A DNA stretch of 64,000 nucleotides from positions 136,317,339 to 136,381,338 of the forward strand of contig NC_068981.1 of assembly GCF_001194135.2 (NCBI RefSeq), read 5' to 3'. The DNA is from Octopus bimaculoides (Eukaryota). The translations under genes and the position numbers were made by a program. Position 1 is the stretch's first letter; each line of letters begins with the position of its first letter. Under the pieces are notes generated by a model that searched no databases, was not told the origin of the DNA, and saw only the letters and a list, made by a program, of their open reading frames with translations. Shown piece after piece: positions 13,831 through 62,710 of the stretch.

Positions 13831-13861
<31 letters not shown>

Positions 13862-13895: not shown

Positions 13896-13899
13896 TAAA

Positions 13900-24120: not shown

Positions 24121-24268
<148 letters not shown>

Positions 24269-26457: not shown

Positions 26458-26810
26458 CTCTTACTTGTTGCAGTCATTAGATTGCAGCCATGTTGGAGCA
26501 GTGCCCTTAAAGGGCTAGCTGAACAAACTAACACCAGAACTGTTTTTTTAAGTCTGGTGCTTGTTCTGTAGATTCCTTTTGCCAAACTGCTAAATTATGA
26601 CTAAGTAAACAAACCAACACCAATTGCCAAGCAGTGCTGGAGACACACTGTTCCAGGCTCAGCTCTACTGTGTACCACTTTGGGCAAGTGACATCTGATA
26701 TAACCCTGAGCAGCCCAAAGCCTTGTGAGCAGACTTAGTAGCCGGAAACTGAAAGAAGCTTGGGGGGGGTGTGTGTGTGTGTGGGAGTGGGTGCGCGCGC
26801 GCGCTATATA
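26458..26810. mobile_element. SINE family A with internal inversion (3' half on -, 5' half on +)
   Basis: 26458-26648 is the reverse-complement 3' half; 26650-26810 is the forward 5' half ending in the central (GT)n. Confidence 0.6.
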
Positions 26811-29374
26811 TATAATTATATCGTGTGATAACTTTAGATGACTGTCATAGTCATACAGCAGTGTCATTCATTTCTAGTCTTTTGCGAGGACATGTTTGAC
26901 CATGGGGAAATATTGGTGTGCTTGGAAATAGATGAGGATTGGTGACAGTGAGGGCATCTAGTCATAGAAAAAATGAACAAGAAACTAATATTTCTGGGGA
27001 ATTCTACCCTGTATGTCTATATCATAATCTTTAGTTAAACTAATATAAATTCAGAATTTACATTTACTACATTTTGTAGACATCCTATGCTGTATTATAA
27101 ACAGAAAGCTATGTGAAACATATTTTGAGATAATCCTGGATATGTAATTATTGATTAGCCAAAATATAACATGTACATGTAACTTATGTACTTTTGATCA
27201 CAGATGTCTGGGTAAAACTGAAAATAGACGACCATGTTGAAAGTTTCTGTAAACATTTTTTTTCTGTAAATACCTATTGTTCAGTAATTATTTTTGTCCT
27301 TTTCTTGTTCTGACCCACATACCACCAAGATTGTTGTACAAACATTTAATGACTCAATATTCTGTTTGTGAAAGCCAGAGTAAAGCAAATCATTCTTGGA
27401 GGGAACATTTGTGATTCATAACTTGTCAAACTAGTTTCATACTTAAAGATACTGTCACTTTCTTACCGAATTTAATTATTTTTCTTTTATGAGATTTCTA
27501 TAATAATTTCATTAATACGATCTCACTCTTATTTTCTTTTACTGGTTTAATCATTGGACTGTGCCAATGCTGGGGCAGTGACTTCAAGCTTTTTTGTGAA
27601 TCATACTGATCCTGTACTTATTTCACCCTGGTACATATTTTTTAAATCTCTTTCAACTGTAGTTATTGGAGCAGTCTAAATAAACACTTGCGTGTGTGTA
27701 TGTGTGCGTGTGTGTATATATATGTATATATATATATANNNNNNNNNNNNNNNNNNNNNNNNNNNNNNNNNNNNNNNNNNNNNNNNNNNNNNNNNNNNNN
27801 NNNNNNNNNNNNNNNNNNNNNNNNNNNNNNNNNNNNNNTCATTTAATATGATAGTTTTCCTGTTGGCATGGGTTGTATAGTCTGACAAATAACTGGAAAG
27901 CCAGAAGACTGTGCCATGCTCCACTGTCTGCTTTTGGCATGGTTTTTACAGCTGGACTCCCTTAATGCCGACCACTTTACAGAGTAGACTCCTAACATTA
28001 ACAACAATACTCCTCTCAGAGTTGAGTTTTAATCTTTACCATTCATGTATCATCATAACCCCTTTTCCTGCTGTCATAAACTTGATTAGATATTTTTTGA
28101 AGTGGCTTTTCATAGCCAGATGCCTTCTTGATGCCAACTGTTTTTAGATATATACCTCACAAAAGGTAGGCTCGTATCTCGTTTAGTCTGAAAAACCATG
28201 ATTTTCAAATACTCTTTTGTTAGCCGGTCACCATTTTTATAGCTGCGCTTTGTTACCATTTGTGTAACACTGTTTTTATATGTTTCCTATTTGGAATTAG
28301 ATAATAAATATATTTTACTTTTGAAGTAGGAATATATATTGATAAACTCGTCACTTATAACTTACTTATAAGTGTTATCATTATACATAAGTCCTGATTC
28401 CAGCTACATAAATGCTATAGTGAGAAATATATACTCTGAAATGCTAAGGGACATTGTATGCGTGCATGTATGTTGAAAATAAACAAAATTTGTGTTCTTT
28501 TAACCGCTATAAAAAAAAATACAGTTTCACAATTGCAGAAATAAATTTCATTAATAAATTGAAGAACGTGAAGAAAGAGAAAATAATTACTACATTATTT
28601 TATTTATATACATTTAACATCTATAGTACAATTGGAAAGTAAAATCATTTTGCCGTAGAGAATTACAACTTAAAATTCACACTAGCTAATCCTTCATACC
28701 AACTACTGGAGTTCACAACTATCCAAATAAGCCTTGTTGGATTTTTATCATAGACATGGCATAAAAAATAGCCAATATCTCAATGAGTGTCATGGAGTTT
28801 AGTAACAATCCAATGAACATTGAGTAATTTCCCCCAAAATCAGGGTTTTTATAACTGTTCATATCTGAATTCTAAGAAGTGTATTTCATGAAAATTTCTT
28901 TGACGAAAGTTTAGAATTCCTATATGGGCAGTAAATTTAACCAATGGGATACCAACAATTATGCTTGTTCGGGCAAGCAACCATTACATCATATTGCCAC
29001 CTTTTTTGACTTGCTACAACTCGTACACATATCAGTAATGAACTGAAAGAATGAGTGCTCAAAGAAGTTTGGCCAAGGTGCCTTGCAGAATGGAATTAAT
29101 TGTAAATTTTAGGGTTGCTCATTCTTATCATGCAAATTCTATTGATGCTAGTTTAATGAAGAGCTGCTATAATTTGGTAAATTATTTTAGCAATTTTTTC
29201 CATCCTTTGTACAGTGTGATTTGTATTTAAGTTTATCTTCATGTTGGCATTTAGAATTGTCTTCATTTTTAAAAGAGAAAACCTAATTTTATTCAAAAAG
29301 TTATTGTTTCCCAGTTTAAATATTTTCTGTTTTCAAACTTAAATTGTTAGGTGAGGTTAGTCCATAAGAAACAT

Positions 29375-30663: not shown

Positions 30664-30756
<93 letters not shown>
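30664..30756. repeat. (CA)n microsatellite; another at ~62650-62710
   Basis: Direct reading. Confidence 0.95.
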
Positions 30757-32055: not shown

Positions 32056-32086
<31 letters not shown>

Positions 32087-34100
32087 NNNNNNNNNNNNNN
32101 NNNNNNNNNNNNNNNNNNNNNNNNNNNNNNNNNNNNNNNNNNNNNNNNNNNNNNNNNNNNNNNNNNNNNNNNNNNNNNNNNNNNNNNNNNNNNNNNNNNN
32201 NNNNNNNNNNNNNNNNNNNNNNNNNNNNNNNNNNNNNNNNNNNNNNNNNNNNNNNNNNNNNNNNNNNNNNNNNNNNNNNNNNNNNNNNNNNNNNNNNNNN
32301 NNNNNNNNNNNNNNNNNNNNNNNNNNNNNNNNNNNNNNNNNNNNNNNNNNNNNNNNNNNNNNNNNNNNNNNNNNNNNNNNNNNNNNNNNNNNNNNNNNNN
32401 NNNNNNNNNNNNNNNNNNNNNNNNNNNNNNNNNNNNNNNNNNNNNNNNNNNNNNNNNNNNNNNNNNNNNNNNNNNNNNNNNNNNNNNNNNNNNNNNNNNN
32501 NNNNNNNNNNNNNNNNNNNNNNNNNNNNNNNNNNNNNNNNNNNNNNNNNNNNNNNNNNNNNNNNNNNNNNNNNNNNNNNNNNNNNNNNNNNNNNNNNNNN
32601 NNNNNNNNNNNNNNNNNNNNNNNNNNNNNNNNNNNNNNNNNNNNNNNNNNNNNNNNNNNNNNNNNNNNNNNNNNNNNNNNNNNNNNNNNNNNNNAAAAAA
32701 AAAAAAAAAAAAAAACTAATGTTGTGAAAGGAGCATCTGTTTTAATATTATTTTATTTGCTTGCCAATCTACCTATTAACAAAGTAGATAATTAAAACAA
32801 TTACCTTTGTTTTCTAGATCAGGTAGACTGTTTCTTCATTCTTTGTCTTACGAAAATTTAATTTTGACTTTACATTTTTTTTTTTTTAATGGATCTTGTA
32901 GTTCCATTTACTGTTCTATGATTGAACTTCACAACTTCAATGTTTTCAAGTAGACAAGGAAGTAACCTAGTTCTCTGATAATGAGGCAAATCAAAAACTA
33001 TATTTAGGATACGGGGCTAAAGATGCTTTGAAACTTATATATAACATTTGTGTTTTCTTAATTTGTCAGAATAATGTAAGATTCCACAATTGCAACAGTA
33101 TTGACAATAATAGAAGTTAGCTCCATTCAAGGAGATAATTTTTTTTTCTTTTTACCGATTGCAACCATTGCACTTTGGATATGATGCAATTTTCTTTTAG
33201 GATAGACATGCATTACATTTCTGTTTATTTTTTCCTATACATACTAAGCTTTTGTTTACGCAATTATTTAACAAATTGTTAGAAATAAATGTTCCTTTCC
33301 AGCTGAGTATAGAACAGTAAAATAACCATCATATAAGACAAGATGTTGGTCCTGATGACAACTATTTATTAAAAAAATTTTGGCAAAATAACAATAGTAT
33401 ATGCAGGTTCAATTCTTTATGGCACATGGGAATTTTGCCACACATATGGAGGTACGTGGCTTAGTGGTTAAGGTGTTGGACTCTTGATCGTAAGATTGTG
33501 GTTTTGATTCCTGGATCTTGAGCAAAACACTTCATTTCATGTTGCTCCAGTCCAGGTGAGGAATATATATGCTATGAAACTGGGAAACCAGCCCTTATGA
33601 GTTGGTATGACTTGAAGTTACTTTTTTTTTTTCCTGCATACCACTCAGTCTCTCTTTTACTTAATGTATTTGATGTAGATATTTGTCATTGTCCAACAAA
33701 ACTTCTGCTAAGGGTAATTATTTGAAGGTTATGTTTCTCAGTTATTCCGAACAATAAAAATCAGTTACTATTAACAGATTTTAATCAATTCTTAAATTTT
33801 AATGAATAGAATAATATAAACAAATTTTTATTCTTTATGAGTGTAAATTAAAGAAGAAAAAAAGCTTGTTACTTACTGCCCTATCCTGTGAAGTAATCCA
33901 TATCCAAACTAAATTATTTTCAGACCCTACTAGTAGGGCATGTGCTCCATCTCGAGTAACACTTATCTGGAATTTGAAAGAGTTTGAGACTTTCCAGAGA
34001 TTATAGACTAAAGTATCAGTGATTTCCTTTTCTCTTCTCCTAAACTATCCTAGAAGTCATTTGGAGAGTTAATTTATCAACCAAATAGAATTGGTTGAAT

Positions 34101-34438
34101 ATGGCTGTGTGGTTAAGACACTTGCTTTGTAGTCTTGTGATTTCAGGTTCAAAACCAGTGTGTCACTTTGGGTAAGTGTCTTTTAATAAAGCCCTGGGCT
34201 GATAATGGCTTGTGAGTAAATTTGGTATATGGAAACTGTGGAAGTTCAGTGTGTTTTTTCTTCACACTACTTGATATCAGGCGTTGGTTTATTACAACCC
34301 TGTGACTTAGCAGTTCAGTGAAAAATCAACAGAATAAGTACCACTCTTGAAAAAAAAGTTCTGGGGTTTGTTCTATTAAAATCCCTCAAGGGAGTGCCAT
34401 AATATGGTTGCAGTTAAATGGCTGAAAAAGTAAAAGCA
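34101..34438 (+). mobile_element. Full-length degenerate SINE family A
   Basis: ATGGCTGTGTGGTTAAGA head; GCAGTTAAATGGCTGAAAAAGTAAAAG tail. Confidence 0.75.
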
Positions 34439-36299
34439 ATAATCACTTGCTTGAATTTTATGAGCCTTTCTATCCAGTTTATCATTTTGTAATACTTTTA
34501 TCCTGAAAATGTGTTAGAGAATTTTGGAAGGAGAAGCACTTTTTCTTACAAAAAAGAATTACAATATTTTTGATTTTATTTCTAGGCTTGTTTGGAGGAA
34601 AATCTAACTTTTAGAAATGAAAGGTACTTCAAAATATTGGAAATCATTTTGATGCTTTGAAGTACATGGTTTTCTATAATTCTTTGAGCTTTAAAATCAT
34701 TTTATATTAAAACATTTTTTCAGTAATATTATTAATCTTGTGATGCATGTTGTCCAGCATGAGAGTAATCTCTTAGCAAGACAAGACTAGGATGGGTTAT
34801 CAATTCCTTCTTCAGGTAATTTCTCTAATACAATGTTTTGGGGAAAATTGAGAACTCCGTTTCTAATTTCTGTGTGTTAGGGATCAAAAATCATTAGTTT
34901 TTTTTTTTTCTTCTCTGTACTGGTGTAGGTTAGGTGAGCCTTATTGAAGGAATATTCTATAGTTGCATGTTCTTTCTGTTACCAATCCTTACCTGCTTTT
35001 CAAACCTCTGAGCTATAGAACATTGTTTAAAGATGCTGACATGACATCACTGTTGCCTAAATGATGTCATGTGAACATACATAGATATAAACACTTGCAC
35101 ATTCAAACATATGCATATATAAGATTCCATGGAGTTTCTTCCTATAAAATTCACTCAAGCTTGAGGCTGTAATAGAAAATGTGTTTCCTAAGGTGCAATG
35201 CTATGGAATGCTACCTGAAAATGCATACTTACAAAGTGAGCTTCATCACCACATAATATCTCCATCTATTTCTACAAAAACAAGCAAAAATAAAGAAGAA
35301 ATCTGGTCTTTTTAATAAAAGAAACGGGATGGGAGGGATAATTAGAATCCTCTTTAAAGAGATTTTAATTTTTTATTTTTCTAATTTGACTAATGAAAAA
35401 TCATACGTCAAAAATTTTAAAATCTGCAAATAGTAACCAATCTTTATTGATAAAATTTATTCAGTTGCTGAAATTCTATCTACCCATCAGCAAAATAGTT
35501 TAAAATTTTTATACAGCAATTCAGATAAAATGTTAGATCTGAAACAAATCTTAAGCAGTGATTTATTAAAAAAATAGACATATCACATTTTTAGCTTTAT
35601 AACTTAATTTTTTAAATGTTTGGATTTTTTTTTTTTTTTTTTTTTTTATGAAGTCAACTTTGTGTTTGAATATCAAGTTTTTCTGGGGGTTTTTTAAAAT
35701 CACAAACACCAATTAATTTTAGTGAAACTAATTTTAACAGACATCATTGGCATAATTTCTCAACCCTTTATTCTGTTGAAATATTTCACTGAAGCTAAAC
35801 TTAATCGAATGAGAATGTTATATTAACCTGATCAAAAGAATGTAGTTCTTAGAATTTTAGTTAAGAAATAAGTCTCACTTGCATTAAGGAAGTAGAATAC
35901 ATAATCTGAAAATATTTAACATTTAAAATTTTTTCTTAAGATTCTGAAATCATTTTTGTGTATAATTTAGTGTTTATAGTATTAAAGATGCTAATATTAT
36001 AGAAATGTTATATAAAAGATGCTTTATTGCTGTGATATTGATTAGTTTAACACTTTCAATGCTCTAATGTTATTAGAGGAAGGTGTGAAATGACAAATGG
36101 TTAAGTGTCACATAATTCTATGCCATATTTAATTATACTGGTTTTCATTTTTTGGCTTACCATCCCCAGAGGGATGACAGGCAAGTAATATACATAATGT
36201 GTGTATAATTGTGTGTGTGTGTTTGTATTTTCATACACAAAGTAATATACTGAATGTTTATTGGTCAACCACGCTTTATAAATTTGTAGACCTATGCAT

Positions 36300-37788
36300 T
36301 TAATTTGAAGAGTAGCAGGACTTGTGACAATTTTTAGGGTCCTGATAGACTCTGTAAGAAAACTTATAAGTAGGTAGTCATTTCTAGGGAGTATAGTTGT
36401 GAAGAAGGATTGAACAGTGTTTAGAAATAGGCAGTAAGAGCAAAAGATGTAGATGTAGCAAACAGTCCTGAAAGGAGTTAAATATTTAGCTTAGTATTTC
36501 AGGAAAGCAGAAGCCATTGTTGTAGATGTTGAACAGACAGTTGCAACCATTTCTTTGTTCTAGTGATTGTAGCAGGTTAGCAAATAAGAATCATTTTGTG
36601 TAGGTAAGCAGGATTGTTCATAAAACCTGAAGCTTAACAAGACAGGTGTCTGTTGGAAATGTTGCCGGGAGATGAATAACAAGCAGACCAAAATGAAACC
36701 TTGGCAGAAGTCCATCATGGGAAATACATATTGTATGTGATTAATAGCAGTGAGCCTAAATTAGTATTCTGTCATAAGAGAAATAGCTTTCAGCTTGAAA
36801 GTTGTCTGGGGAAAAAATCTTGGTGATTTAATGTTGGAGATTCTGTTAGTTTCACACATTTTTCTTTGTAAGATTATTAATATATCTTGTAAATATTAAT
36901 GTGGTTTAACATTTTTGGTCAGGTTGGTTGGATTCAGAATTATGTGTAGTTCCATTATTTACTAAGATATAACGGCTTAGGTTATGGTAATGAGTTTACT
37001 GCTGTTGTGACACTTTCATTTCTTCAATATACATAAAATAAATTCCAGTAGTAGCATGCATATTAATGATAATCCCTTGGGTGGGGGGAATCCATTTTTC
37101 TCAGAAGAAATATAAAGTATTTCATACAATTTAGGTTTTTTTTTTTTCTGTCTTAATCTGAGTCTCTTCTTTGTTTGCAAGACAGAGGTTGCTGGGCTGG
37201 GTAATGTGAGCGTAAGGTTTAGATTAGTTTGGTGCAGATGAGTGACTGAGAAAGATTTCTAAAGGTGTGATTGGGAAAGATACAAAATTAGGGAGTCTGA
37301 TAGATTAGGCACAAAGGTAGTAGGAAGAGATTAGGCACTGAATTTCTAAATAGAGGTAGAATGAGTAAATAGGTTTTAGAGAGTGGGGGATATGTATAAA
37401 AAAGAAAATTAAAAAAAAGGAAATATGCAACTGGTTGTTTACAACCAGTGTTACATATTTATATATTTTTATGGTTTTGGGTGGGAAGAGACCCAGTTCT
37501 CAAGACCTCAGCAGACCCTCCGAAACTGTTATTGGTGTGGTTGATGATCAATTTTATTAGTTATGAGTTGATGCCTGGTGAGAGTACTGGGAATTCTTGA
37601 GAGTTGGCATCTTTATGTGGAAGGACTGGATAAAATAGTAAAAGGTTGGGTTTGAGAAGGGATACAAAATGGGTTGCTCTAGAAAGGGATGAGGAAGGCT
37701 TAGGTGAATGTGGTATGCTGTAGTTTAGTGGTTCCCAACCCTTTTATTTAAATGAGTTTTCTCATGGACCCCTTTTAATATGCTTATC

Positions 37789-37876
<88 letters not shown>

Positions 37877-38520
37877 GAAATTTTGAATTTTGTTCACTGA
37901 CCCCCAGTACTTTGTGGACCCCAGGTTGGAAACCACTACTACAGTTAGTTCTGAGAAGAAATTTGTGGTGTGAGCTAAAGGCTAGAGTTTGTCGGCCAGT
38001 GACACTTTGTTAATCATTTGGTTTCCACTTGAATACAACCAAAGATATTTTCATGTATAGCAGCATCACCACCTTTGCAAATGTGAGGATTATTACCTTG
38101 TGGGATTCATGTGCTTTTCGCATAGCATCAGCAGCTACTTAGAATGAAAGTATCTTTTTGCTTTAGTCTTTGGAATGCAAGTTTTTGCTCTGATGTGAGT
38201 GGAATTACAAAGAGAATCATTGGTGCTTGTGATGCCTTGTATCTGTGGTGATTTGTGGATCTTAATTTTTAACTGTCCATGGTTAGAAAAGCTGAATTTC
38301 CTTGATCTGTGATTCTTTGGATTATTATTGTAGGATATGCTGTTATGTCTCCATTAGAAGAGTCTTTATTCCTGGTAGCAGTGTAGGTTTGACAAAGGAT
38401 ATGAATGATGCCTGTGTTTGTAGAAGGTTAAGGAAGAGTGGGGGTGGGGTTATCTATTGGCGTGAGTATTACTATAACCAATTTAAATTGGATCTTCAGT
38501 ATACAACAGTGGAAACTGAG
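36300..38520 (-). mobile_element. Possible very old Penelope-like retroelement relic, interrupted by the MITE at 37726
   Basis: Sustained G-over-C skew on the + strand. Minus-strand peptides SEQKLAFQRLKQKDTFIL..KGG and ISHDGLL loosely recall PLE motifs. Weak, by-eye only. Confidence 0.3.
37726..37938. mobile_element. hAT-type MITE containing a (GT)n(AT)n microsatellite
   Basis: 15-bp TIRs TAGTGGTTCCCAACC / GGTTGGAAACCACTA (14/15). Degenerate 8-bp TSD CTGTAGTT vs CTACAGTT (6/8). Confidence 0.75.
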
Positions 38521-40672
38521 CAACATAAATTGAACCTTGGGAATACCTAAGTTAATGAAGTGTGGGTCAATGAGTCTCATCTAAATGCATTACAATGATA
38601 CAATGTTAGAAAGCTTCCAACACAAACTAGTTGGATAGAATCCATAGACAAGTAGTTCAGCCAGTGTTATTGAAGTAGAACTTTTTTTTTTCTCCTTAAA
38701 GAATTTAGAGTTACATAACCTATTTAACTTGTTTATTTACTTTTAAACCTTGTCCAGTTATATTGAGCAGTTTATTTCTGGTATTTTAGACGTGTACATT
38801 TTTCTACTAGTAATTTTCTAACGAGAAATTCTTTCTCCTTTGTTTTGAACTTGAACTGTAACCAAAATATAAATTTGCAAACATTTTTACATTGCAGGAG
38901 GAAACCTGTTTTCCTAATTTTAGCCCATACTGTTTTATTATAGTCTATTATTTTAAGGAATTCTTTAGATAGCAAGCTAACCAGTTTTGTGAGTTTCGCC
39001 TTCTAGTTAGCTCAGTAATTTGACTGAGTATCCTCTCGTGAAGATGAGATTTTGGCACATCATGAACTTTTCCCCTAAAAAAAGATCTCCAAATATCACC
39101 CCAGGTCCAATATGCAAAGTTGCTTTATTACATGCTTTAACACTAAACTTTTTCCTGAATATGCATTGCTGAAATTGGCTTCATCTAGTACGATTGTGCA
39201 TCTTTTATGCCATCAAATATGGTAGTTACTAATTATTAGTCTTACATCTTAAATTTTTCTAGGGTTATGCATTTGTTTCTGTTGGATTTTTATATACACT
39301 GAATATTAATGTAGATAGGTTGGAAGTATATAAAATTCTTCATTTTTATTCCATTGAGCTTGGACAAATCATTAGTATCTTAGCTGAAGCACATATACAG
39401 GATAATAAACATTTAATCTTGCCAATGAATAGGTAGTGTGTATCTCTCTCTCTCTCTCTCTCACACAAACATACACAGGTGACCAAGTATAAGCTAAACA
39501 AACAGGTTGATTAAAGAGAAAAACAAACTATAGGGGAAAATGGGTGATGTGATGTTTTTATCTTAAGTAAAATATGGTAATTCTTTGAAGATGAATATAG
39601 TATTTGTGCCTTCAATAAATACTAATAGGATTTCAATAAAACATCAAAGAACATTAGGGAAGTAAAGCATGTTTGATGTGCAGTTACATTGATGAAAAGG
39701 AATACTGAAGCTTAGTTTTCAGATTCTGTTTAGAAAAGATTTTAGTGTGTGTGCTTGTGTGTAGATATTACTTTCCATTATGGATTGTAATTTTGGGGAT
39801 TTCTTTTTTTTTTTGTATAATTAATATAATTGGTTATTTAATAGCCTTGTAGTCTTTGTAAGTATTATTCTCAACCATACCATGTCCCAAAATACATTTA
39901 AAATAACAGATTTGCTTATCATTAACAGTTGAGGATTCATCATATATGTATACTAGGATTTATTATTAACTTTGAATTCCTTAACAGCCTGTGATACTTT
40001 GCAAAATGAACTTTGTCTTTATTGATGATCTCTTAGCATTTTGTGTAAGTAGATGCTGTTTCTAATGAAAAAGTACCTTTGTAATAAATCAGTTTCCTGA
40101 AAAGACTATTGATCTGCTTGTCAATTTAAAAATAATTTTGGGTTTTGATTAGTTTCATAATAATTTTATACTTGCTTGATCTAGTGTTACTTCTAAAATA
40201 TTGATTCTATTGGATTTATAGAGGGACTAAATAGTTATATAGTGTGAAGGTGATTTGACTAAATGGCTGTAGAACATGAAATATTATCACTTATGTTTTC
40301 TATGCTGGCATGAGTTGGATGGCTTGACAGGAGCTGGTGAGGCCAAGGGCTGCACCAGGTTCCATAACCTGTTTTGGCTTGGTTTCTACAGCTGGATGCC
40401 CTTCCTAATGCCAGCCACTTTACAGTGTGTGCTGGGTGCTTTTTACATGGCACCAGTACAAACATGCAATCACTAAATCTGCTCTCCTCCTTTTCATTAC
40501 AAAATGTCAAATTAACTGTAGCTTTTCCCATTTTACTTACTCCAAAGAAAAGCAATGTTAATGATCTGTTTTCTGCAGGCTGAAAGTTACCAGGGGCCAA
40601 AATTTATTGCAGGCTTCAGCACAGCATGGGAGCAGTGTTTTTCACTGACATGTCAATAATATAAAGCAAATA

Positions 40673-41063
40673 ATTATAAAGCAAATACCTGTATAAGCAC
40701 TTGTATACATATTTTGTAAGTCTGTAAAAAGGGCTTTGGCCTGAAACTTTGGTGAGAAAACTTAATCCGGCCCGCACATGGAAAATGGTTGCCCATGCCT
40801 GCTCTACAGTATATCTATAATAGTAATCCTTTAGTTTGGGTTTAAAAAGAAACTATTATAAGAGGCTGCTATAAAACTAACTAACTAGCAGCTCCATGAG
40901 TAGATCTTCTAAGATCATCACTACAATAAACAAGCATTGCATTCAAGAGGAAAATGTTACTTTACACTTCAGGCAGAACTAATTTTGTGAATGGATCCCC
41001 TTTGATGTGTTGATAGAAAACAAATCTAGCATACACAATAGAATGGATGACAAAGAAATTTGA
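40673..41063 (-). repeat. Inverted-repeat arm 1: reverse-complement copy of 43246-43635 (129 bp hAT end plus ~262 bp host flank)
   Basis: Read base by base; about 5 differences (4 substitutions, 1 indel) in ~391 bp. Contains GTTGCCCATGCCTG ending at 40801, followed by CTCTACAG (reverse complement of the TSD). Confidence 0.95.
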
Positions 41064-41964
41064 TGGATACATTAAAAAAATGATTAGAAAAATATCCTGC
41101 ACTGAAGAGAAGCTGGATACCAGACCACATCATGTGATGAAATATAGAACAAGTCCTTCACACGATTGCCATGAACAGGCATGTGACTATTTAGGTGGCA
41201 AATGAGTAAATTAGTTATGGTTCATAGAAATATCAGGGCAAAGCTGGATAACAACACTGAACAAATCTGTAACTTCTGTTCAATAGGTGTATGGCTTGTG
41301 GCATATGAAAGAAATTAGTTATGGCTCTTGATATGAAATAGTCCTTAACAGATAGAACTATAGTTAACATAGCAACAACGACTTGACATTTCAAGTTCTA
41401 ACTCAAGCATCTAGTGGGAGACCACATTACTGATGCCTGGACAACTAATTCTCTCATCAAGAAAATAATAATTATAAGTACTTTGATGTTATTTACTGAC
41501 TCACCTTGTTTCCAATCTGTACATAAACTCTACTATTTGGGAATGTTACTAATTGTCTAATTTAAGGTTTCTCCAGTTGTGTGTGTGTCTCCCTCTCTCT
41601 GTTGTGTGTATATACTCTCTCTCACATACACACGACTGTGTGGTTGAGAAGCTTGGCATCTTGGGCAAATGTCTTCTATGGCACCAGACCAACAAAAAAT
41701 CTTATAGATTTGGTAGACAGAAACTGAAAGAAGCCCAGTATATATGTTTGTACATGTGAGTTGGTGTCCTGTTGTCTTGACATTGCAAGTAGTGTTCATT
41801 ATAACTAATTTTCTATAAAACATATGTTCAGCAACAGGAAGCGTGGGTATCTGGCCGTAGAAAATCTCATTCTGTCCAACTTATGCTAGCATGGAGAAAT
41901 GAACATTTAAAATGACCTTATGTATGTATATGTATTATATGCTTTTTTTCCTTTTCTTCTATAG

Positions 41965-42079
41965 TACATGAGATGGTCTGGAGTACGAAAGAATGTCCAG
42001 CACACAACTCTGGAGAAGGTCTTGGCTTTGGAGAATTCTGTGTATTTGTCAATGAGTTAGAGGAATATTATAAAAAAGG
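41965..42079 (+). CDS. Coding exon B; HEMVWSTKECPAHNSGEGLGFGEFCVFVNELEEYYKK(G), second EF-hand-like helix-loop-helix
   Basis: Acceptor ttttttccttttcttctatAG, donor GG|GTAAGC. 115 nt = 2+37 codons+2, phase-compatible with exons A and C. The joined peptide aligns by eye with the calmodulin-type pattern 'L..lt..ev.eMi...d....g.v.feEF'. Confidence 0.88.
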
Positions 42080-43245
42080 GTAAGCATTATTTTCTTATAT
42101 CAGATATAGCTACAGGGCAATGTACCATTTACTGATGCAAATTTTGCCCATGAGTACTTCAGAACTTTGATAATTTATTCTTTTGGTTTGATTCAACATT
42201 AACCCTTTGCTTCTCCACTGTATCATGTGATATGTCGGACATATTTCCCTGGTATGATATACATTCTCAGTTATTCCTTTCCTTTATTCAGTTACAAGAG
42301 TAACTAGAGAACCTATGAAAGGCAAGTTTTATATTACTCAGAACACACGAAGCAAGGAGTAACTAAAATTCTAAAAGTAAGCATGGATATTTAGGGCAAA
42401 CTTATGAGAGTATTTTGGACAAGTTAAGGGCTAATCTATCTGAACTCACAATTCCTTTTCTATTAGCTACAGAAGGTAGCTTACAAGGCATTAAATTATT
42501 TTTCTTTAGTGCTTTCTTTGTGTGCTCATTTGGTGCATGCAAGTGTGTTTGTGAGACAGAAAGATGTATAACCTTTACTCTTCATTTTAGAATAATCATG
42601 TACTCTGGAATTGAGTGAACTCTTTTAAACTAGTCATTTGAGTTTTTTGTTTCTCTTTTTTTTTTTTCTTTTTTAATTACTTGATGCTGTTTACTTTAAA
42701 ATGCTTAGATTCTGGTAATTAATGCTGTCATTACTAATCTAAATTAATGATGAATATAGAGTACGGTGATAATATTAAAGCCTTTTAAGTAGGTTGCAGG
42801 GCTTGTTGCTCTTAGTCTGAACCCTTGTCCTACTCATTTCTGTCTGTGCAATAACTTGATGTGGAAAGCACAATTGATCCAGAAGTTGACCATCTCTAAC
42901 TGCAATGTAAGGGTTTTCCTGAGTTTTAGTCCAATGAATTGCAGAAACAGGGTTTTCCAGGCCTTCCATTTCTATTTCATTTCTTTCTGAATTGCTTCAC
43001 AATATTTTGTTGATGTTTCTCAGAGCAGCATTTAAAATACTCACTATGCACATGCAAGAGAATGTATAGAAAGTGTTGTGTGTGTATATGTGTGTGTGTC
43101 CATTAGCTGTCTCCTACCTGCAAAGATTTTCATTCTAAAGAAATATATAAGGGTTGATGACAGGAAGGGCATCTGCTTCAGACTTCATCCAACCCATGCA
43201 AGCATGAAAAAGTGGATGTTAAAATGATGATACTTGACACTTCTC

Positions 43246-43635
43246 TCAAATTTCTTTGTCATCCATTCTATTGTGTATGCTAGATTTGTTTTTTATCAAC
43301 ACATCAAAGGGGATCCATTCACAAAATTAGTTCTGCCTGAAGTGTAAAGTAACATTTTCCTCTTGAATGCAATGCTTGTTTATTGTAGTGATGATCTTAG
43401 AAGATCTACTCATGGAGCTGCTAGTTAGTAGTTTTATAGCATCCTCTTATAATAGTTTCTTTTTAAACCCAAACTAAAGGATTACTATTATAGATATACT
43501 GTAGAGCAGGCATGGGCAACCATTTTCCATGTGCGGGCCGGATTAAGTTTTCTCACCAAAGTTTCAGGCCAAAGCCCTTATTACAGACTTACAAAATATG
43601 TATACAAGTGCTTATACAAGTATTTGCTTTATAAT
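43246..43635 (+). repeat. Inverted-repeat arm 2 (host flank, TSD and left end of the hAT element)
   Basis: Reverse complement of 40673-41063. The 2,182-bp spacer contains exon B. Confidence 0.95.
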
Positions 43636-45358
43636 ATAAAAAGGATATTAAAATAAGGGTAAGAAGAAAACAATTTATATAAAAACAAATGTAGTTGAAT
43701 CAGAAAAATAATTCATTCAAATAAGGAGAAAATTGCTATGAAACATTATTCTAATGGGATATTTGGGGTTGATGTTTCTTCAACATCTCGATGTTTGAAG
43801 AAATGCTAGAGGTAGCTACTCTCAAGTTAATTTCAAGATGATTATCAGTTATTCTTGATCTTGCTTTGGATTTAGTAGATTTCATATTTGAGAATAGCCG
43901 TTCACATTTATATGTGCTCCCAAAGGGTGACATTTTCTTTTTAGCAAAATCCACGATCAAGGGGAAATTTTCTCTAGGTAGGCTTTTATAAAAAACTCTA
44001 TTAGTGAATGATCTCCCATTTTAAATCTTCATTCCTTTGGAGTTCAATTAATTCCATCTGTAATTCCTTGGGAACCTGGTTAATATTGATATTAAAAGGT
44101 GAAGAAAATATACATTGATTTGTTTCTTGTGATTATCTTGAAATCTATTATTGAATTTTTCATTGATCAATTTTACCTCATCTGCATAAGAAGTACAATC
44201 AATTTTGCCATGAATTACCAATGTTGGGAAATGGAATGTATTACAATTTCTGAGCTGTTGTTCCCACAATTGCATTATGTTTTGAAATATTTTGATATGA
44301 CTGATGAATGAATTGGCCTTCTCCTTCTAATTTCAAATTAAGGTCATTAAGATATGAAATGAAGTCAACAAGAAAAGCAAGATCACATATCCAGCCATCA
44401 TCACTCAATTCAGACATAGACTTTCTTTTCATTTCCATGAATGTAAAAATTTCACTTCTCAGATCATAAAATAGTTTCAACATTTTTCCTTTGTTCAATC
44501 ATCGCACCTCACAATAGTACACCATATCTCCATACTCTGCCTCGATATCCTCAAGAAATTCTTTAAACTGGTGGTGGTTCAAAGCTCCAGATTTTATAAA
44601 ATCTTTACTTGAAACAACCTTGGACATGACCTGTTCAAATTTGAATGACTTGGCACACAAATTCGCCTGGTGAATTATGCAATGAAAAATGGATAAATCT
44701 TTTGTGTCTATATTCATAGAAGCCAATTCTGATCTGGTTTTAGAAACTAAGCCTGTTTTACAACCATCGCAGGAGCACCATCTGTTGATAAACCATGAAG
44801 GTTTTTGAAATGTAGATTAAATCTGGCCACTAACATTTTCAATTCTTGAAAAATATCCTCTCCAGTGGTGGTGTCTTTCATTCCGCGAAGACCAAGCATT
44901 TCTTCTGTGATATTTAAATCTTCATCAATTCCATGTACAAAATCTGCAAGTTGGGCTGTATTTGACACATCAATGCTCTCATCTTTAGCTACGGAAAAAT
45001 ATTTAAAACGCAAAGAAAGTTTTTGCAAGCCTAATTGTGTTGAGAGGACATAACCTTAAAGATCGAAAGGTAGCTACTCACTGACTAGTAGGGCTTATGA
45101 TGAGTTTCATTTTATTGCTGATGTTTCCTTCTCTTTTCCAGGGAAACATGAGTTTCACTTTCTCTATTTTGATTCTATGCATTTAGTCCTTTCACCTTTC
45201 CTAGAATTTTTGCTAAAGTGCATTCCACAAAAGCTTCTTTCATTTTTGCCTATTTACTCGGAGCCAGCTAGACTAGAAAATTAACCACTTCACGGCCATA
45301 CTGCTACAGGTCTCCATGCGCCAGATCAGGCCCGTGGGCCGTAGGTTGCCCATGCCTG
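43507..45358 (-). mobile_element. Non-autonomous (decayed, probably 5'-internally deleted) hAT DNA transposon, Buster/Charlie/SPIN type
   Basis: TIRs CAGGCATGGGCAAC (from 43507) and GTTGCCCATGCCTG (to 45358). Perfect 8-bp TSD CTGTAGAG at 43499-43506 and 45359-45366, with the central TA typical of Buster-type targets. Internal transposase remnants. Confidence 0.93.
43751..45028 (-). pseudogene. Fragmented hAT transposase (GTF2IRD2/EPM2AIP1-like)
   Basis: Consecutive minus-strand ORFs carry FSVAKDESIDVSNTAQL (D), LSTDGAPAM (D), FHCIIHQANLC (CxxH), YYCEVR* (RW turned into a stop) and FGSTYKCERLFS (E). Broken by stops and frameshifts. Confidence 0.9.
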
Positions 45359-45366
45359 CTGTAGAG

Positions 45367-45716
45367 TATCTTTCAGTCAGTGGACTGCAGCCATGCTGGT
45401 AGACTTCCTTGTAGGGTTTTACTCAAACAGATTGGCCCCAATTCTTACTTTTAAGTCGGGTACTTACACTCTTGGTTTTTATTGCCAAACCAAGTTTTAG
45501 GGGTGTAAACAAACCAGCACTGTCAAACAGTGAGTAGGGGACAACACATACACCCACATATTATACAATGGGCTTCCACAGTTTTCATCTATGAAATTCA
45601 CTCATAAGGTATTAGTCAGCTAAGAGCTATAGTAGGCACTTGTCCTAAGTGCCATGCAGTAGGACTGAATCCTAAACCATGTGGTTAGAAAATAAGCTTA
45701 ACCACACAGCCATGCC
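45367..45716 (-). mobile_element. SINE family A whose tail abuts the right TSD of the hAT element
   Basis: TTTCAGTCAGTGGACTGCAGCCATGCTGG ... ACCACACAGCCATGCC. Confidence 0.75.
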
Positions 45717-47005
45717 AATAGACAAGTACTATAGAATACCAATGTACTATAATAGCTATAGTAGTTAGGCGACTGGTAGGGTTATTACATCAGTAATTTA
45801 ATGTTAACTAAAGAGTGTAAAATCTCCTGGTTATACTTAAACTGAAGTAAATATAATGAAGTGCTTTCACTAAGAATGCAAAATACTGTCTTGACTGCAG
45901 AACATCAGTTTTAATCTATAGATTCTACCCACAAATAAGAATTAATTACAATAATATATGGGACAAGTACAGTGGAAACTGGTAGTCATTTCAAGTTGAT
46001 TTGTTTTAATTAAGCATTCATTTCATTACTAAAAATTAACATTAAAATTTTTCTTTCATCTGGCTGTTTCTAATTTCAAAAATGTTAAATCAATCAGGTT
46101 AAATTTTATTTTGTACCTGGAAATGTTATTTTTATCATTTCATTTTAACGTAAATTAATTTGCGATTGATCGATCTGTATATTCACTTGAGATGCTCTGT
46201 TTAAACAGTTGAAATGCTATGTTTAAACAAATCTAAATTATATACCAATAACTTTGTACTTAGCTGGGTATTTTTTTTCTTTTGAAAGTTTTGTATGCTC
46301 AAATATTGCTGCAGTATTTCCCAAATGTCTTCCTTCATTCCACAGAGAAACTAGAATTCTGTGTTTTGAATTAACGTTGAAACCACTTTGTGAATTTGTG
46401 GTGGATGTAACGTTACATATACTTTCCTGAGCGTTTTCTGCAAGAAATCAAAGAAAAGTATTTCCCTTGCTTAAGAAACCTAAAGAAAACCTAATCTCAA
46501 AAGTGCTTCAACTGGGATGAGATAAAAATGTTTGTGTGTCTGTTTGTTTAAATTCAGTTTCTTATTTACAGTTTGGATTAGTCATTTTTCTTTTTACAAA
46601 GAATCTTAAGTATTATCCAGTTTTTCTTCTCCCTTTCTCTTTATATATCTTTTTTTTGTTTTGTTTTGTTCTTTTTACACTCTTCTTGAGACCCATACTA
46701 TGAAATATTAGCTTTCTATCTTAATATAAACATTTCATCTCGGATGCTTTTGCTATATTGAGCTATTAATCACTATGGCAATAGGATTCGGTTTGTTGGA
46801 AAATTTGGTCAATAAAACCAGACATTAGCATTTACATTAGTTTTTCTTTTATTTTTTATGAAGTTAAAGTTTTGTTTTTATTCAGAAAGTAGATGTCACT
46901 TAGGACTAAAATATATACATATATTTTAATGTATTTTATATACATTCTTTTGAGTTTTTCTTCATATATGAATATTTGTAACTGTGTGTGTATGTGTATA
47001 TATAT

Positions 47006-47044
<39 letters not shown>

Positions 47045-47529
47045 NNNNNNNNNNNNNNNNNNNNNNNNNNNNNNNNNNNNNNNNNNNNNNNNNNNNNNNN
47101 NNNNNNNNNNNNNNNNNNNNNNNNNNNNNNNNNNNNNNNNNNNNNNNNNNNNNNNNNNNNNNNNNNNNNNNNNNNNNNNNNNNNNNNNNNNNNNNNNNNN
47201 NNNNNNNNNNNNNNNNNNNNNNNNTCTTAATTTATTGAAATAATATCTTTACAGAAAGAATGTTTTCTGGTTGTTTCTAAATTCTGTGTCGCTCAAGCAT
47301 AATGGCTCGTATGTCTTGAGGTAATGTAAAACAAGAATTATTGATAGATGTAGTGAATGGATAGCTTTTAGGTTTGTGAAATGAACAATAGCAGGAGTTA
47401 TACATCATTGTTTTGTGTCTACATTTCAGGCTGGCATGGATTGGCTGGATTGTCACAGTCAGTTCTTATTTGGAGTTACTGCTCTCCTAGATGGTGAAGG
47501 GATTGTGTTGTCCTTTATTTATTTTAGTA

Positions 47530-47563: not shown

Positions 47564-48708
47564 CTTGATGCCTTTTCTAATATCAACCATTTTAAATACT
47601 GGGTACATTTTATAGTGAGGCTTGTACTAGAAAGATGTTCCCAGTAAAACTGGAGTATACTCTGACTTACATTGATTCTTCATCATTATCATTGTTTAAC
47701 ATCTGTTTCCCATGCTGGCATGGGTTGGACTGTTTGACAGGAGCTGGCCAACCAGAGAGCTGTCCAGGTCCCAATTTCTTGTTTTGACATGATTTCTACT
47801 GCTGGATAAACTTGCTGGCATGTAAAAAGCTGGGTGCCATAAATCTGCATCCATAAATCTAGATAATCTTGTATGTTTCTATTTATCTAGAATGTAGTAC
47901 TTGAGTGATATTGCAAGGATTTCTCAGTGGCTGGGTGTTGGTTTAAAAACACTTTTGGTGCACCTACCTCAATAAAGAGACTTGATGGGTTAGAAATTGT
48001 TTCCTATCCAGGATTATTCCCTAGGGTTATCTCATTTTTACCCCTACTTCTAACTTTTAGTACCCTTAGGTTTTCAAACAGTTTGTGAGATTGGATAGTG
48101 TTAGAAGTTCAATGCGAATATGTTAAATGATAAAATAATTTCATAAGAGGAAGTGGTTAATATTTAAATAATATTTAATATTTCTACTTGATATTTTAAT
48201 ATAGATACTAAGAAGGGGGATTGGTATTTAAATACTCAAGAAAATGAAAATAAATTTTCTGGAGGAATGAATAGCTATTCAGTGTCTTCTCTTCAGAAAT
48301 GAAGTGGTTTTGATTGTGTAGAAGTGATTTGGATGGGATGATAATGTACTTAAAACTTATCTCTTCAAGATGGATGCCAGAAATAGTTACTTCAGTTCAT
48401 AAAAGCCAAACAGTGAAAATAAATATATCTTCTGTGTGAAAATATTTTCCATTCATTTTCCCATACTATGGGATGGATAAGTCCTTCATCATTTGGTACA
48501 CACAGCAACAAATAAAAGCTGAACATATTTGTGGTGTGTGTCAGATATTTGGTATGGTTTCAATTAATAGTAGCAGTCTACACTGTAGAATGGATTATAA
48601 GAGAAAGTTTGTCTGCGACTGGATGAGAGTCCTCTCGACTTTGCATCAGTAATTTTTTTATTCAGAATTACTATCGTCCTGGATTGTTGTTTGCACTAGG
48701 CTAAGGTT

Positions 48709-48763: not shown

Positions 48764-49689
48764 NNNNNNNNNNNNNNNNNNNNNNNNNNNNNNNNNNNNN
48801 NNNNNNNNNNNNNNNNNNNNNNNNNNNNNNNNNNNNNNNNNNNNNNNNNNNNNNNNNNNNNNNNNNNNNNNNNNNNNNNNNNNNNNNNNNNNNNNNNNNN
48901 NNNNNNNNNNNNNNNNNNNNNNNNNNNNNNNNNNNNNNNNNNNNNNNNNNNNNNNNNNNNNNNNNNNNNNNNNNNNNNNNNNNNNNNNNNNNNNNNNNNN
49001 NNNNNNNNNNNNNNNNNNNNNNNNNNNNNNNNNNNNNNNNNNNNNNNNNNNNNNNNNNNNNNNNNNNNNNNNNNNNNNNNNNNNNNNNNNNNNNNNNNNN
49101 NNNNNNNNNNNNNNNNNNNNNNNNNNNNNNNNNNNNNNNNNNNNNNNNNNNNNNNNNNNNNNNNNNNNNNNNNNNNNNNNNNNNNNNNNNNNNNNNNNNN
49201 NNNNNNNNNNNNNNNNNNNNNNNNNNNNNNNNNNNNNNNNNNNNNNNNNNNNNNNNNNNNNNNNNNNNNNNNNNNNNNNNNNNNNNNNNNNNNNNNNNNN
49301 NNNNNNNNNNNNNNNNNNNNNNNNNNNNNNNNNNNNNNNNNNNNNNNNNNNNNNNNNNNNNNNNNNNNNNNNNNNNNNNNNNNNNNNNNNNNNNNNNNNN
49401 NNNNNNNNNNNNNNNNNNNNNNNNNNNNNNNNNNNNNNNNNNNNNNNNNNNNNNNNNNNNNNNNNNNNNNNNNNNNNNNNNNNNNNNNNNNNNNNNNNNN
49501 NNNNNNNNNNNNNNNNNNNNNNNNNNNNNNNNCATTTCTGGAATCCTATTCCGTAAACAATAAAAATGAAAACTTTTTGTTTACGGTTTTGCGGTAATAT
49601 GGATTCACTTGGATAAAAGTATTGGTAATTTCTCCAATCTTGTGGTAGCCCAAGAAAAGTTGGCGTAAAGGGCTCTGTCCAACTAGACA

Positions 49690-52552: not shown

Positions 52553-52626
52553 GCAGGATGGTTTAAAAGCTGTGAAAGAAATTCAAAAGTGTCAAAAAGC
52601 TGAGAAAACAAAATACAAAGATCAAG
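52553..52626 (+). CDS. Coding exon C; QDGLKAVKEIQKCQKAEKTKYKDQ
   Basis: Acceptor atatttccttgcAG, donor AG|GTAAGG. 74 nt = 1+24 codons+1. GG|G gives Gly in frame with exon B. Confidence 0.8.
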
Positions 52627-53194
52627 GTAAGGCTTTTTATTTTAAAATAAATAAAATAAACATATTCAATGTATGTAGCAGTAAAAAGCAAATTGGAATT
52701 ACATACTGAAAAAAAAAGAAAGATGGTATCAGTCTATTTTCATTTTTCTGACAAGTTGATTTTAGACATGTTTTAGTTTTATTGTAACCTCTTCACTCTA
52801 CTACACAAGCTATAATGACAATGAAATAATCAGTAAATTTTATGAAGGATGTGCTATAGCTGAAAAAATGTGTAATGGGTATATGTACTGTGGCTGTATA
52901 CCACATTGCATGGCAAAGCTGTGTCGATATGCATCAGAGGTACCAGTTTTTGTGTGCAAAAGAAGACTCCACTGGTATGGACATACTACCTATGAAGCTT
53001 GACAGTTGGGGGGAAAAGTGTCAATTGATCTTCTGCAGAAGAGGAAGGTTTAGGAAGGACTTGTAAAAGGCTGATTTCAAGATGTGAATCTCCTAAGAAA
53101 AATTATCAGGGACTGTAAGAAGTGGCAAGATGATTGCTGAAGATACACACATTGAAAAAATGGTCTAAAAATAAATTAGTATTTTTTTTTTCTA

Positions 53195-53468
53195 TTCTTT
53201 TACTTGTTTTAGTCATTTGACTGTGGCCAAGCTGCAGCATCACCTTTAGTCGAATAAATGAACCCCAGGACGTATTCTTTGTAAGCCTAGTACTTATTCT
53301 CAGTCTCTTTTTACTGAACTTCTAAGTTATGGGGACATAAACACCAACATTGGTTGTCAAGTGATGATGGGAACACACATACTCGCAAGTATGCGTACAA
53401 GTACATGCGTGCACACACATGCAAGTACATGCACACACACATGCACAAGTACATACGCATACACACAT

Positions 53469-53499
<31 letters not shown>

Positions 53500-53965
53500 T
53501 GATGAGCTTTCAGTTTCCATTTACCAAATCCACTCATAAGGCTTTCGTCAGCCTGAGGCTGTAGTGGAAGACACTTACCCAAGGTGCCACGCTGTGGGTC
53601 TGAACCCAGAACCATGTGGTTGGGAAGCAAGTTTCTTACCACACAGCCACTCCTGTGCCTAAAAATCTATAGTCATATAGATTGTTTTTTCTATCTTGTC
53701 ATATGCTGGGTCACTGCCTCCAAGAATTTTTAGTTGATTGAATCAACCCCAGTACTTATTTCAAGTGTGGTACTTATTCTATCAGTTTCTTTTCCTAAAC
53801 CACTAAGTTATGGAGACATAAACACACCAACACTGGTTGTCAAGTAGTGATGGCACATGCTTCTTCAGTTTCCATTTACCATATCACTCAAAGCTTTGGT
53901 CAGCCCATAGCTATAGTAAAAGATACTTGCCTAAAGCACCAAGCAGTAGGACTGAACTCAGAACC
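53195..53965 (-). mobile_element. Two tandem SINE family-A copies (53195-53660, 53690-53965)
   Basis: Same motifs as 21583-21948; the first has an expanded (CA/CATG) centre. Confidence 0.8.

Positions 53966-62647: not shown

Positions 62648-62710
<63 letters not shown>

Follow-up and report, generated by a model that had tools for sequence, protein, structure and literature searches.

How did a near-perfect inverted repeat come to bracket a single coding exon in an octopus gene, and does the repeat act upon that exon? The question is raised by a 64-kb stretch of the Octopus bimaculoides genome (hereafter the window, meaning the whole stretch that was analysed). An earlier note on this DNA had described the repeat as a recent duplication that may have put the exon under a switch controlled by RNA structure. 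We suggest, with a probability that we put at roughly 0.65, that the repeat is a young local inverted micro-duplication, formed without a transposase and most likely a neutral by-product of DNA repair.

Results and discussion

An exon of the raw orthologue lies between two near-identical arms

The repeat, its spacer and the exons concerned are as follows.

40673–41063, no strand: left arm, 391 nt, the probable derived copy
41064–43245, + strand: spacer, or would-be RNA hairpin loop, 2182 bp, made up of intron and exon B
43246–43635, no strand: right arm, 390 nt, the probable template
6569–6675, + strand: exon A, ending in …RKLWSTYQKYMKGDCIPFNSIRDAFNELNIYPSLTQ in phase 1, 35 kb upstream of exon B (tblastn)
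41965–42079, + strand: exon B, 115 nt, encoding VHEMVWSTKECPAHNSGEGLGFGEFCVFVNELEEYYKKG (tblastn, splice sites)
52553–52626, + strand: exon C, QDGLKAVKEIQKCQKAEKTKYKDQ, 10.5 kb downstream of exon B

The arms are reverse complements at 98.7% identity, and the roughly five differences reported earlier over about 390 bp are now counted as four substitutions (40689/43619, 40728/43580, 40866/43442 and 41016/43293) and a 1-nt indel at 40879. Their similarity ends abruptly at both ends of both arms. When the whole 64-kb window was compared with itself by BLAST, no other pair in either orientation reached 100 bp and 85% identity, and the match between the arms is thus far beyond chance. The 2,182-bp loop holding exon B was also described correctly, as the spacer measures 2182 nt and the left and right arms lie 901 and 1166 nt away from the exon, within one + strand transcription unit.

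That unit is LOC106880113, the O. bimaculoides orthologue of Drosophila raw. Exons A, B and C are co-linear on the + strand and translate to residues identical to O. bimaculoides XP_052826977.1, which confirms that exon B is genuine and that the gene runs in the direction first proposed; exon A was found solely by tblastn with the orthologue. The acceptor of exon B is strong (a polypyrimidine tract, then tatag at the exon boundary), as is its donor (GG/gtaagc), and Argonauta retains the exon at 87% over its length. A representative search gave a match at E=4.5e-24. Although a word-index protein search with exons B and C had returned no match, an exhaustive HMMER search recovered the Argonauta orthologue, so that the earlier negative was a problem of sensitivity. 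The gene ranges over 186 kb in O. sinensis, 174 kb in Argonauta and 191 kb in version 2 of the O. bimaculoides assembly. Scanning the whole window against Rfam and for tRNAs gave no hits.

The host protein is orthologous to a conserved metazoan protein with PF15891 domains, its insect relatives being annotated as 'NDT-like domain-containing protein raw', and the precomputed Pfam matches of the octopus proteins are to PF15891 only. The label of EF-hand that had been attached to this coding region finds only loose support: several more distant orthologues carry EF-hand matches (PF13499/PF13405, at the level of the whole protein), but Pfam assigned exons B and C alone to no family, and regular-expression scans for canonical EF-hand loop patterns gave no relevant match.

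The arms combine the end of a hAT transposon with its flank

Immediately to the right of the exon's downstream arm, and reaching into it, lies a transposon of the hAT superfamily, and the two arms can be divided with reference to its boundary.

~43170–43242, − strand: SINE-like head, inside the spacer and adjoining the right arm
43246–43498: host flank in the right arm, 253 bp
43499–43506, no strand: first copy of the hAT target-site duplication, CTGTAGAG, in the right arm
43507–43635: first 129 bp of the hAT element, in the right arm
43507–45358, − strand: the whole hAT element, 1852 bp, with perfect 15-bp terminal inverted repeats CAGGCATGGGCAACC; degenerate and non-autonomous
45359–45366, no strand: second copy of the hAT target-site duplication, CTGTAGAG
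45367–45720, − strand: SINE-like copy of family D8, its 3' end hit by the hAT insertion
40673–40801: inverted hAT terminal 129 bp in the left arm, tip at 40801
40802–40809: CTCTACAG, the reverse complement of the hAT target-site duplication, in the left arm
40810–41063: inverted host flank in the left arm, 254 bp
40660–40672, no strand: the 13-mer TATAAAGCAAATA, directly outside the left arm, repeating arm bases 40675–40687

The target-site duplication is identical at eight of eight positions on the two sides of the element, and it fits the hAT consensus nTnnnnAn. The terminal inverted repeats agree at 15 of 15 positions and begin with CAG, and identical tips bound a hAT copy of O. sinensis (sequence L001), relative to which the present element is internally shorter by about 820 bp in a DNA alignment. 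It belongs to the GTF2IRD2/FAM200/ZBED5-like (Charlie/Buster-type) group: its translation, once corrected for frame, matched GTF2IRD2-like proteins at E=1.6e-194 and shared 73% identity with a protein of 598 aa, and Pfam searches of its individual ORFs gave DUF4371 and Dimer_Tnp_hAT, both under the curated cut-offs. The element holds no intact transposase, its coding remnants being at least six ORF pieces in different frames with several frameshifts and stops. The SINE-like copy that it struck has matches at 53477–53649, 18562–18790, 21843–21936 and elsewhere in the window.

In the right arm this boundary is undisturbed. The alignment of the window's hAT with the O. sinensis copy starts at the tip (43507) and runs inward without a break past 43635, the end of the arm, and the perfect terminal repeats and perfect duplications on both sides of the element indicate that the right arm sits in its original context. 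It also keeps the state of the O. sinensis copy at both of the arm differences that fall in the hAT part. In the left arm, by comparison, the hAT end is cut at 129 bp and joined to non-hAT sequence, with the target-site duplication present; its hAT portion matches the independent O. sinensis copy (L001 7927–8056) at 91% and ends exactly at the tip. The match to L001 is confined to arm positions 262–390, halting exactly at the hAT tip, and arm positions 1–261 had no match there. Two of the arm differences lie in the hAT part and three in the flank part, evenly spread, which fits a single copying event. The view of the repeat as a recent duplication hence survives as to its youth and its origin by duplication, but it had missed the composition of the arms, and as these consist of a transposon end plus flank the account of how the repeat arose has to change. 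Which arm is the original can be read from the transposon boundary that both arms contain.

The repeat might also be an ordinary dispersed pair, like inverted Alu elements, in which members of one transposable-element family inserted independently and in opposite orientations. The genome is very repeat-rich (66% repeats in O. vulgaris; PMC13282606), several SINE families occur in this intron, and each arm is partly transposon. Nevertheless, the hAT accounts for merely 129 of the 390 bp, and the arms run on through its tip and target-site duplication into 253 bp of common non-hAT flank; independent insertions would share neither this duplication nor the flank. Moreover, the unit itself has neither terminal repeats nor a target-site duplication and is flanked by ATA/ATA only, and no third copy of the arm was found in the 64-kb window or in L001. 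Two separate insertions are accordingly quite unlikely. The flank had no further copy in the 64-kb window, as against four to six occurrences for the true SINE families, and the 261-bp flank may belong to a low-copy repeat.

Two further candidates were considered and rejected. A foldback or long-TIR element comprising the whole unit (40673–43635) was discarded on finding that the unit is flanked by ATA/ATA only, without its own target-site duplication, that it encloses a conserved host exon, and that it has no other copy in the window or L001. A retrocopy was set aside, as the ends of the left arm show neither poly(A) nor a target-site duplication.

A probable local repair event as the source of the left arm

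That the left arm is an inverted copy of exactly this composite of flank, duplication and hAT end points to a young local duplication made without a transposase, and its cause was most likely a fold-back or template-switch repair event. In the order that we propose, a non-autonomous hAT first entered the intron downstream of exon B, where it struck the 3' end of a SINE and duplicated CTGTAGAG. Later, 390 bp spanning the boundary of that insertion (253 bp of flank, the 8 bp, and 129 bp of hAT) were copied in reverse; the copy lies in the intron upstream of exon B, 2.18 kb leftward of its template, at a landing site that was probably reached by chance. As to the mechanism, we infer that a break at 40672/41064 would have been resected. 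Its 3' end would then have folded back onto neighbouring sequence of the same chromatid or the sister, or a stalled polymerase would have switched to such sequence as its template; about 390 nt would have been synthesised from 43246 outward to 43635, after which the end would have come free and been joined to the far side of the break, with the 13-mer stutter left at the outer junction. As the template is merely 2.18 kb off in cis, local fold-back or template switching is favoured over capture of a random fragment. Inverted duplications with kilobase-scale spacers are described for fold-back events (PMC3907307), and templated inverted insertions at breaks have also been described (PMC11724301, PMC8421209).

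The 13-mer TATAAAGCAAATA forms a stutter with a 15-bp period at the outer junction of the left arm, and neither the right arm nor the hAT copy of O. sinensis has it; we estimate from base composition that chance would produce such a stutter with a probability of about 1e-6 to 1e-5. Some microhomology is usual under template-switch models, whereas here the microhomology with the template is 0 nt at each of the two junctions. We take the stutter to be suggestive of template switching but not diagnostic of it.

A different possibility is that one arm is an allelic or paralogous fragment that was misplaced or misoriented in a short-read draft scaffold. The window contains eight runs of N, as befits a draft scaffold, and short reads can hardly resolve a 390-bp near-identical repeat. 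On the other hand, a single gap-free stretch (32695–47044) takes in both arms and the spacer, and each of the four junctions is clean. The right arm runs without interruption into a complete hAT, and a 13-mer stutter peculiar to its junction adjoins the left arm. The arms are also 1.3% apart, including an indel, and were thus assembled as distinct sequences; heterozygosity in the O. bimaculoides genome is reportedly far below this figure, which likewise counts against an artefact. A look-up of small ORFs spanning the left-arm junctions found no matches. On balance we consider an assembly error unlikely.

Since a hAT end is present in each arm, with the tips facing each other across the exon, an aberrant transposition of the Ac/Ds type (between sister chromatids or with reversed ends) might be thought to have made the inverted duplication, and in maize alternative transposition does yield inverted duplications. 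However, hAT transposase cuts at the element tip, whereas the breakpoints here, at 43246 and 43635, lie away from the tip at 43507, and tip and duplication are intact in the middle of the copied segment. The resident hAT, furthermore, encodes no intact transposase, and we regard an origin of this type as highly improbable. In Drosophila, inverted duplications on either side of an inversion are a familiar signature, and staggered breaks could in principle have inverted 2.6 kb and left such duplications at its ends. This would demand that the spacer, exon B included, had earlier been in the opposite orientation, while exon B is a conserved constitutive exon co-linear with A and C, making an inversion exceedingly improbable. 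The fold-back or template-switch duplication is our preferred explanation of the repeat.

A predicted RNA duplex around exon B

Within the LOC106880113 pre-mRNA, base pairing between the arms is predicted to yield a duplex of about 390 bp, with exon B looped out. The minimum-free-energy fold reaches −683 kcal/mol, with 387 of the 391 left-arm bases paired with the right arm, in keeping with the earlier proposal that the repeat could give rise to a long RNA duplex. Folded singly, an arm shows no more RNA structure than shuffled controls do (z = −0.01). A predicted stem of this length is a plausible ADAR substrate. The consequence of skipping the exon had also been foreseen correctly. Exon B being 115 nt, its omission shifts the frame, and translation of the A–C join reads ...LTQ G R M V stop, ending after four codons. 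The predicted duplex could permit a low level of exon B skipping, or the formation of an exon B circular RNA.

A stronger proposal is that of a structure-controlled switch, in which the stem would drive regulated skipping of exon B (with a premature stop and nonsense-mediated decay) or a circular RNA, and ADAR would tune the stem. Several features lend themselves to it: the arms lie in both flanking introns, 901 and 1166 nt from the exon and in one transcription unit, the duplex is predicted to be very stable, and loss of the 115-nt exon would bring a stop after four codons. In minigenes, intronic inverted repeats suffice for circularisation (PMC4201285), and octopus RNA is heavily edited, metazoan editing being concentrated at nearby inverted repeats (PMC9989829). 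Yet the same minigenes showed that stronger hairpins do not necessarily give more circularisation and may inhibit it (PMC4201285), and ADAR can be expected to open stems of this kind. The annotated isoforms of O. sinensis, O. vulgaris and O. bimaculoides all contain exon B and vary in the first exon only; the exon is conserved to Argonauta and its splice sites are strong; and the anatomy of the repeat is that of an accidental product of repair. A regulatory switch is, in our judgement, doubtful. Its more specific form, in which a lineage-specific 390-bp stem would yield a measurable tissue- or temperature-dependent fraction of skipped, decay-targeted or circular exon B set by ADAR hyper-editing, appears a decidedly slim prospect.

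By default we expect exon B to remain constitutive and the repeat to have little or no regulatory role, and on present evidence we view it as an ordinary neutral structural variant rather than a demonstrated regulatory device. If the assembly is right, the locus offers a clean and datable case of intronic inverted repeats that arose without two transposon insertions, 390 bp having been copied backwards across an exon by a single repair event. It would also be a natural test case of whether a near-perfect 390-bp intronic duplex leads to hyper-editing, and of whether it perturbs the splicing of a constitutive, frame-shifting exon in a conserved gene. Were the switch to prove real, it would be a newly born regulatory device whose mutational origin is legible in the DNA.

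Comparison with known systems

As with inverted Alu pairs, complementary sequences lie here in the two introns flanking one exon and are predicted to pair (PMC4201285). The arms differ from such pairs in being a one-off local duplication that belongs to no dispersed family, and at 390 bp and 98.7% identity they far exceed the 30–40 nt that suffice in minigenes.

The element at 43507–45358 resembles non-autonomous hATs of the Charlie/Buster type in its 8-bp duplication, its terminal repeats starting with CAG, and its remnants of DUF4371 and the dimerisation domain. The inverted repeat, in contrast, is not a transposon and is not cut at the hAT ends, the hAT having supplied raw material only. 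The arrangement recalls Ac/Ds alternative transposition in its two oddly oriented hAT termini and in a flank duplicated in inverted order; the breakpoints here are off the element tips, however, and the defining feature of that process is thus lacking.

A further resemblance is to fold-back and template-switch events (MMBIR, synthesis-dependent end joining, 'filler DNA'): an inverted copy in cis, a kilobase spacer, abrupt boundaries and a short stutter at one junction (PMC3907307, PMC11724301, PMC8421209). The present case departs from template-switch products in having no microhomology at either junction, and its mechanism is read from the product only. In size, the 390-bp insert is much larger than templated insertions in yeast, which are mostly 5–34 bp, and much smaller than human fold-back duplications.

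The inverted repeat and its host gene

The repeat lies where the earlier note had placed it, as a repeat finder, MAFFT and BLAST all return the same arms, at 40673–41063 (391 nt) and 43246–43635 (390 nt), separated by 2182 nt. In a global alignment the arms differ by four substitutions and one single-base indel (98.7% identity), and similarity ends sharply at all four arm boundaries. In a self-BLAST of the whole window, no second pair of repeats, in either relative orientation, reached both 100 bp and 85% identity. Other 'long inverted repeats' from the repeat finder (13475–13896 with 62643–63064, and 32066–32715) were N runs matching one another, and its 386-copy direct family was likewise an artefact of N runs.

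The conceptual translation of exons B and C, used as query in an exhaustive HMMER search, retrieved one protein, of 547 aa, from Argonauta hians (E = 4.5e-24, 81% identity). When this protein was compared with the window by tblastn, three exons were located, all with strong splice sites.

Exons placed by tblastn
6569–6675, + strand, exon A
41965–42079, + strand, exon B (115 nt)
52553–52626, + strand, exon C

A search with the Argonauta protein and a cluster look-up identified the family as metazoan proteins with two NDT-like domains (PF15891), the insect members of which are annotated 'NDT-like domain-containing protein raw'; the same cluster holds O. sinensis LOC115214842 and O. bimaculoides LOC106880113. 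The three window exons agree with O. bimaculoides XP_052826977.1 at every residue, against two differences from the O. sinensis protein, so the window is O. bimaculoides DNA. The gene is 191 kb long in the v2 assembly, and both arms are intronic within this one long transcription unit, the left 901 nt upstream and the right 1166 nt downstream of exon B. A word-index protein search with a 62-aa query gave no candidate, though two proteins (P0243 and P0244) hold that exact sequence; both are non-representative members whose cluster representative (P0122) differs by one residue, and negatives from this search are uninformative for short queries.

Exon A, 35 kb upstream of exon B and between two assembly gaps, is present in the newer model XP_052826977.1; an older RefSeq/UniProt model (XP_014785414.1/A0A0L8G063, 493 aa) lacks it and starts at a methionine within exon B. 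The 35-kb intron holds long microsatellites, (CT)n, (CA)n and (GT)n(TA)n, at 24122–24265, 30664–30756 and 37790–37870.

A transposon boundary within the arms

Directly to the right of the right arm, minus-strand ORF fragments (43751–45028) resemble a hAT transposase, and their frame-corrected concatenation matches GTF2IRD2-like/FAM200-like hAT proteins (E = 1.6e-194). An independent family copy in O. sinensis (L001), reached through protein P0056, aligns continuously with the window element from its tip at 43507 inward, with 88% identity and identical tips; the window element is about 820 bp shorter internally. The 296-aa 'GTF2IRD2-like' protein annotated in the O. sinensis copy is probably a piece of the transposon rather than a host gene; the target-site duplication of this copy is degraded (ACATAAAG/ACGTAAAA).

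Only arm positions 262–390 match the O. sinensis copy, the match stopping precisely at the hAT tip, and positions 1–261 have no counterpart in that copy; the right arm therefore consists of flank, target-site duplication and the start of the hAT element. The left arm is an inverted copy of precisely this three-part composite. The five differences between the arms are distributed evenly across the hAT and flank portions, and wherever they fall in the hAT portion (two sites) the state of the right arm is that of the O. sinensis copy.

Mobile elements and arm components
43507–45358, − strand, hAT element with perfect 15-bp terminal inverted repeats CAGGCATGGGCAACC
43499–43506 and 45359–45366, perfect 8-bp hAT target-site duplication CTGTAGAG
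L001 5363–8056 (CM016864.1), O. sinensis hAT copy, 2694 bp, with the same terminal repeats
Right arm, in order: 253 bp of host flank, the 8-bp target-site duplication, the first 129 bp of hAT
40673–40801, left arm, hAT end
40802–40809, left arm, CTCTACAG
40810–41063, left arm, flank
13895–14025, 24834–24911, 40276–40406, 43170–43242 (−), 47686–47816, 57977–58094 and 61701–61831, SINE-like family 1, head …TTTTCCATGCTGGCATGGGTTGGA…
3582–3681, 21581–21944, 26550–26640, 45367–45720 (−) and 53193–53853, SINE-like family 2
5734–6087, 6882–7493, 13475–13830, 27739–27838, 32087–32694, 47045–47224, 48764–49532 and 62711–63330, N runs

In the rebuilt empty site, the 3′ end of a SINE copy (45367–45720) is the point at which the hAT element had inserted, and the head of another SINE adjoins the right arm on its inner side. 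Family 1 has at least six copies in the window, in both orientations.

At the outer junction of the left arm a 13-mer, TATAAAGCAAATA (40660–40672), repeats arm bases 40675–40687. It is absent from the right arm and from the O. sinensis copy, and we take it to reflect polymerase stutter or later slippage. Neither junction has microhomology, and ORFs at the arm junctions returned no match when looked up. The window is draft scaffold with eight N gaps, and both arms and the spacer lie inside a single gap-free stretch (32695–47044); a simple assembly artefact is unlikely, given that the arms differ by 1.3% and an indel, that the junctions are clean and that one of them has a stutter of its own.

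Marine metagenome contigs carry an intact 598-aa transposase, 69% identical to the window remnant, encoded at 768–2564 of a 3090-bp Tara Oceans contig (L002); DNA near the 3′ end of this contig has 72% similarity to the window hAT end. As the transposase is intact and the DNA similar, active members of the family may persist in some marine animal.

Origin of the duplication

The repeat, read in the earlier note as a recent duplication, is reinterpreted here as an inverted micro-duplication across the hAT boundary in which transposase was not involved. The right arm is the original, because the resident hAT element has both target-site duplications and runs unbroken through 43635; the left arm is the copy, because the truncated hAT end there is still joined to target-site duplication and flank, which also places the duplication after the hAT insertion. 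Two independent insertions would not have flank and target-site duplication in common. The breakpoints (43246 and 43635) do not fall at the tip (43507), which rules out cutting by transposase and with it Ac/Ds-type alternative transposition. A staggered-break inversion would mean that exon B once lay in antisense orientation, and the conservation and co-linearity of this exon rule that out. The left arm is not a retrocopy, as no poly(A) tail or separate target-site duplication accompanies it.

A templated inverted insertion is the simplest model. The DNA would have broken at 40672|41064 and been resected, after which the exon-side 3′ end would fold back, or the polymerase switch template, to sequence 2.2 kb away; some 390 nt would then be synthesised from 43246 outward to 43635, and the copied end rejoined to the opposite side of the break. 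Such an insertion accounts for the orientation, spacer and copying direction seen, and a template just 2.2 kb distant in a gigabase-size genome favours a local process over capture of a random fragment. The missing microhomology and the 13-mer fit this model less neatly. Similar products have been described, namely spacer-containing inverted duplications formed by fold-back (PMC3907307), inverted insertions templated at breaks (PMC11724301) and MMBIR templated insertions (PMC8421209).

Predicted consequences for RNA and gene function

When the whole 2963-nt segment is folded to minimum free energy, 387 of the left arm's 391 bases have their partners in the right arm. The predicted energy of arm–arm pairing is −683 kcal/mol, and a single arm alone has no more structure than shuffled sequence. 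As both arms are intronic in one transcription unit, a long duplex looping out exon B would be physically expected. Long intramolecular duplexes are classic ADAR substrates, and hyper-editing of this one is probable. In metazoans, RNA editing clusters at inverted repeats that lie near each other, and in octopus its extent is extreme (PMC9989829). Intronic inverted repeats are able to drive circularisation; stronger hairpins bring no reliable gain, can be inhibitory, and are expected to be unwound by ADAR (PMC4201285).

The earlier note had proposed that exon B may be under a structure-controlled switch, through skipping or back-splicing. The A-to-C join on skipping does read Q-G-R-M-V-stop, as it had predicted; its EF-hand label is loosely supported, by matches in several distant orthologues, but exons B and C alone have no Pfam match, and octopus proteins carry PF15891 alone in the precomputed annotation. 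Exon B is kept in every annotated isoform of O. sinensis, O. vulgaris and O. bimaculoides, which vary in the first exon only, and its conservation reaches Argonauta. Given these isoforms, this conservation and the unreliable effect of hairpin strength, the repeat is most likely neutral: a role as a regulatory switch appears improbable, and any function beyond incidental dsRNA formation unlikely.

If the arms recombined with each other, the 2.2-kb spacer might be inverted, a putative rearrangement that would inactivate exon B. The two hAT tips also face one another across exon B (40802–43506) in a 'reversed ends' geometry. That a compatible active transposase might cut both, deleting exon B, is speculative, as both tips belong to the 3′ end and one of the two hAT portions is just 129 bp long. 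Among known systems, the locus belongs with intronic inverted repeats and with templated inverted duplications.
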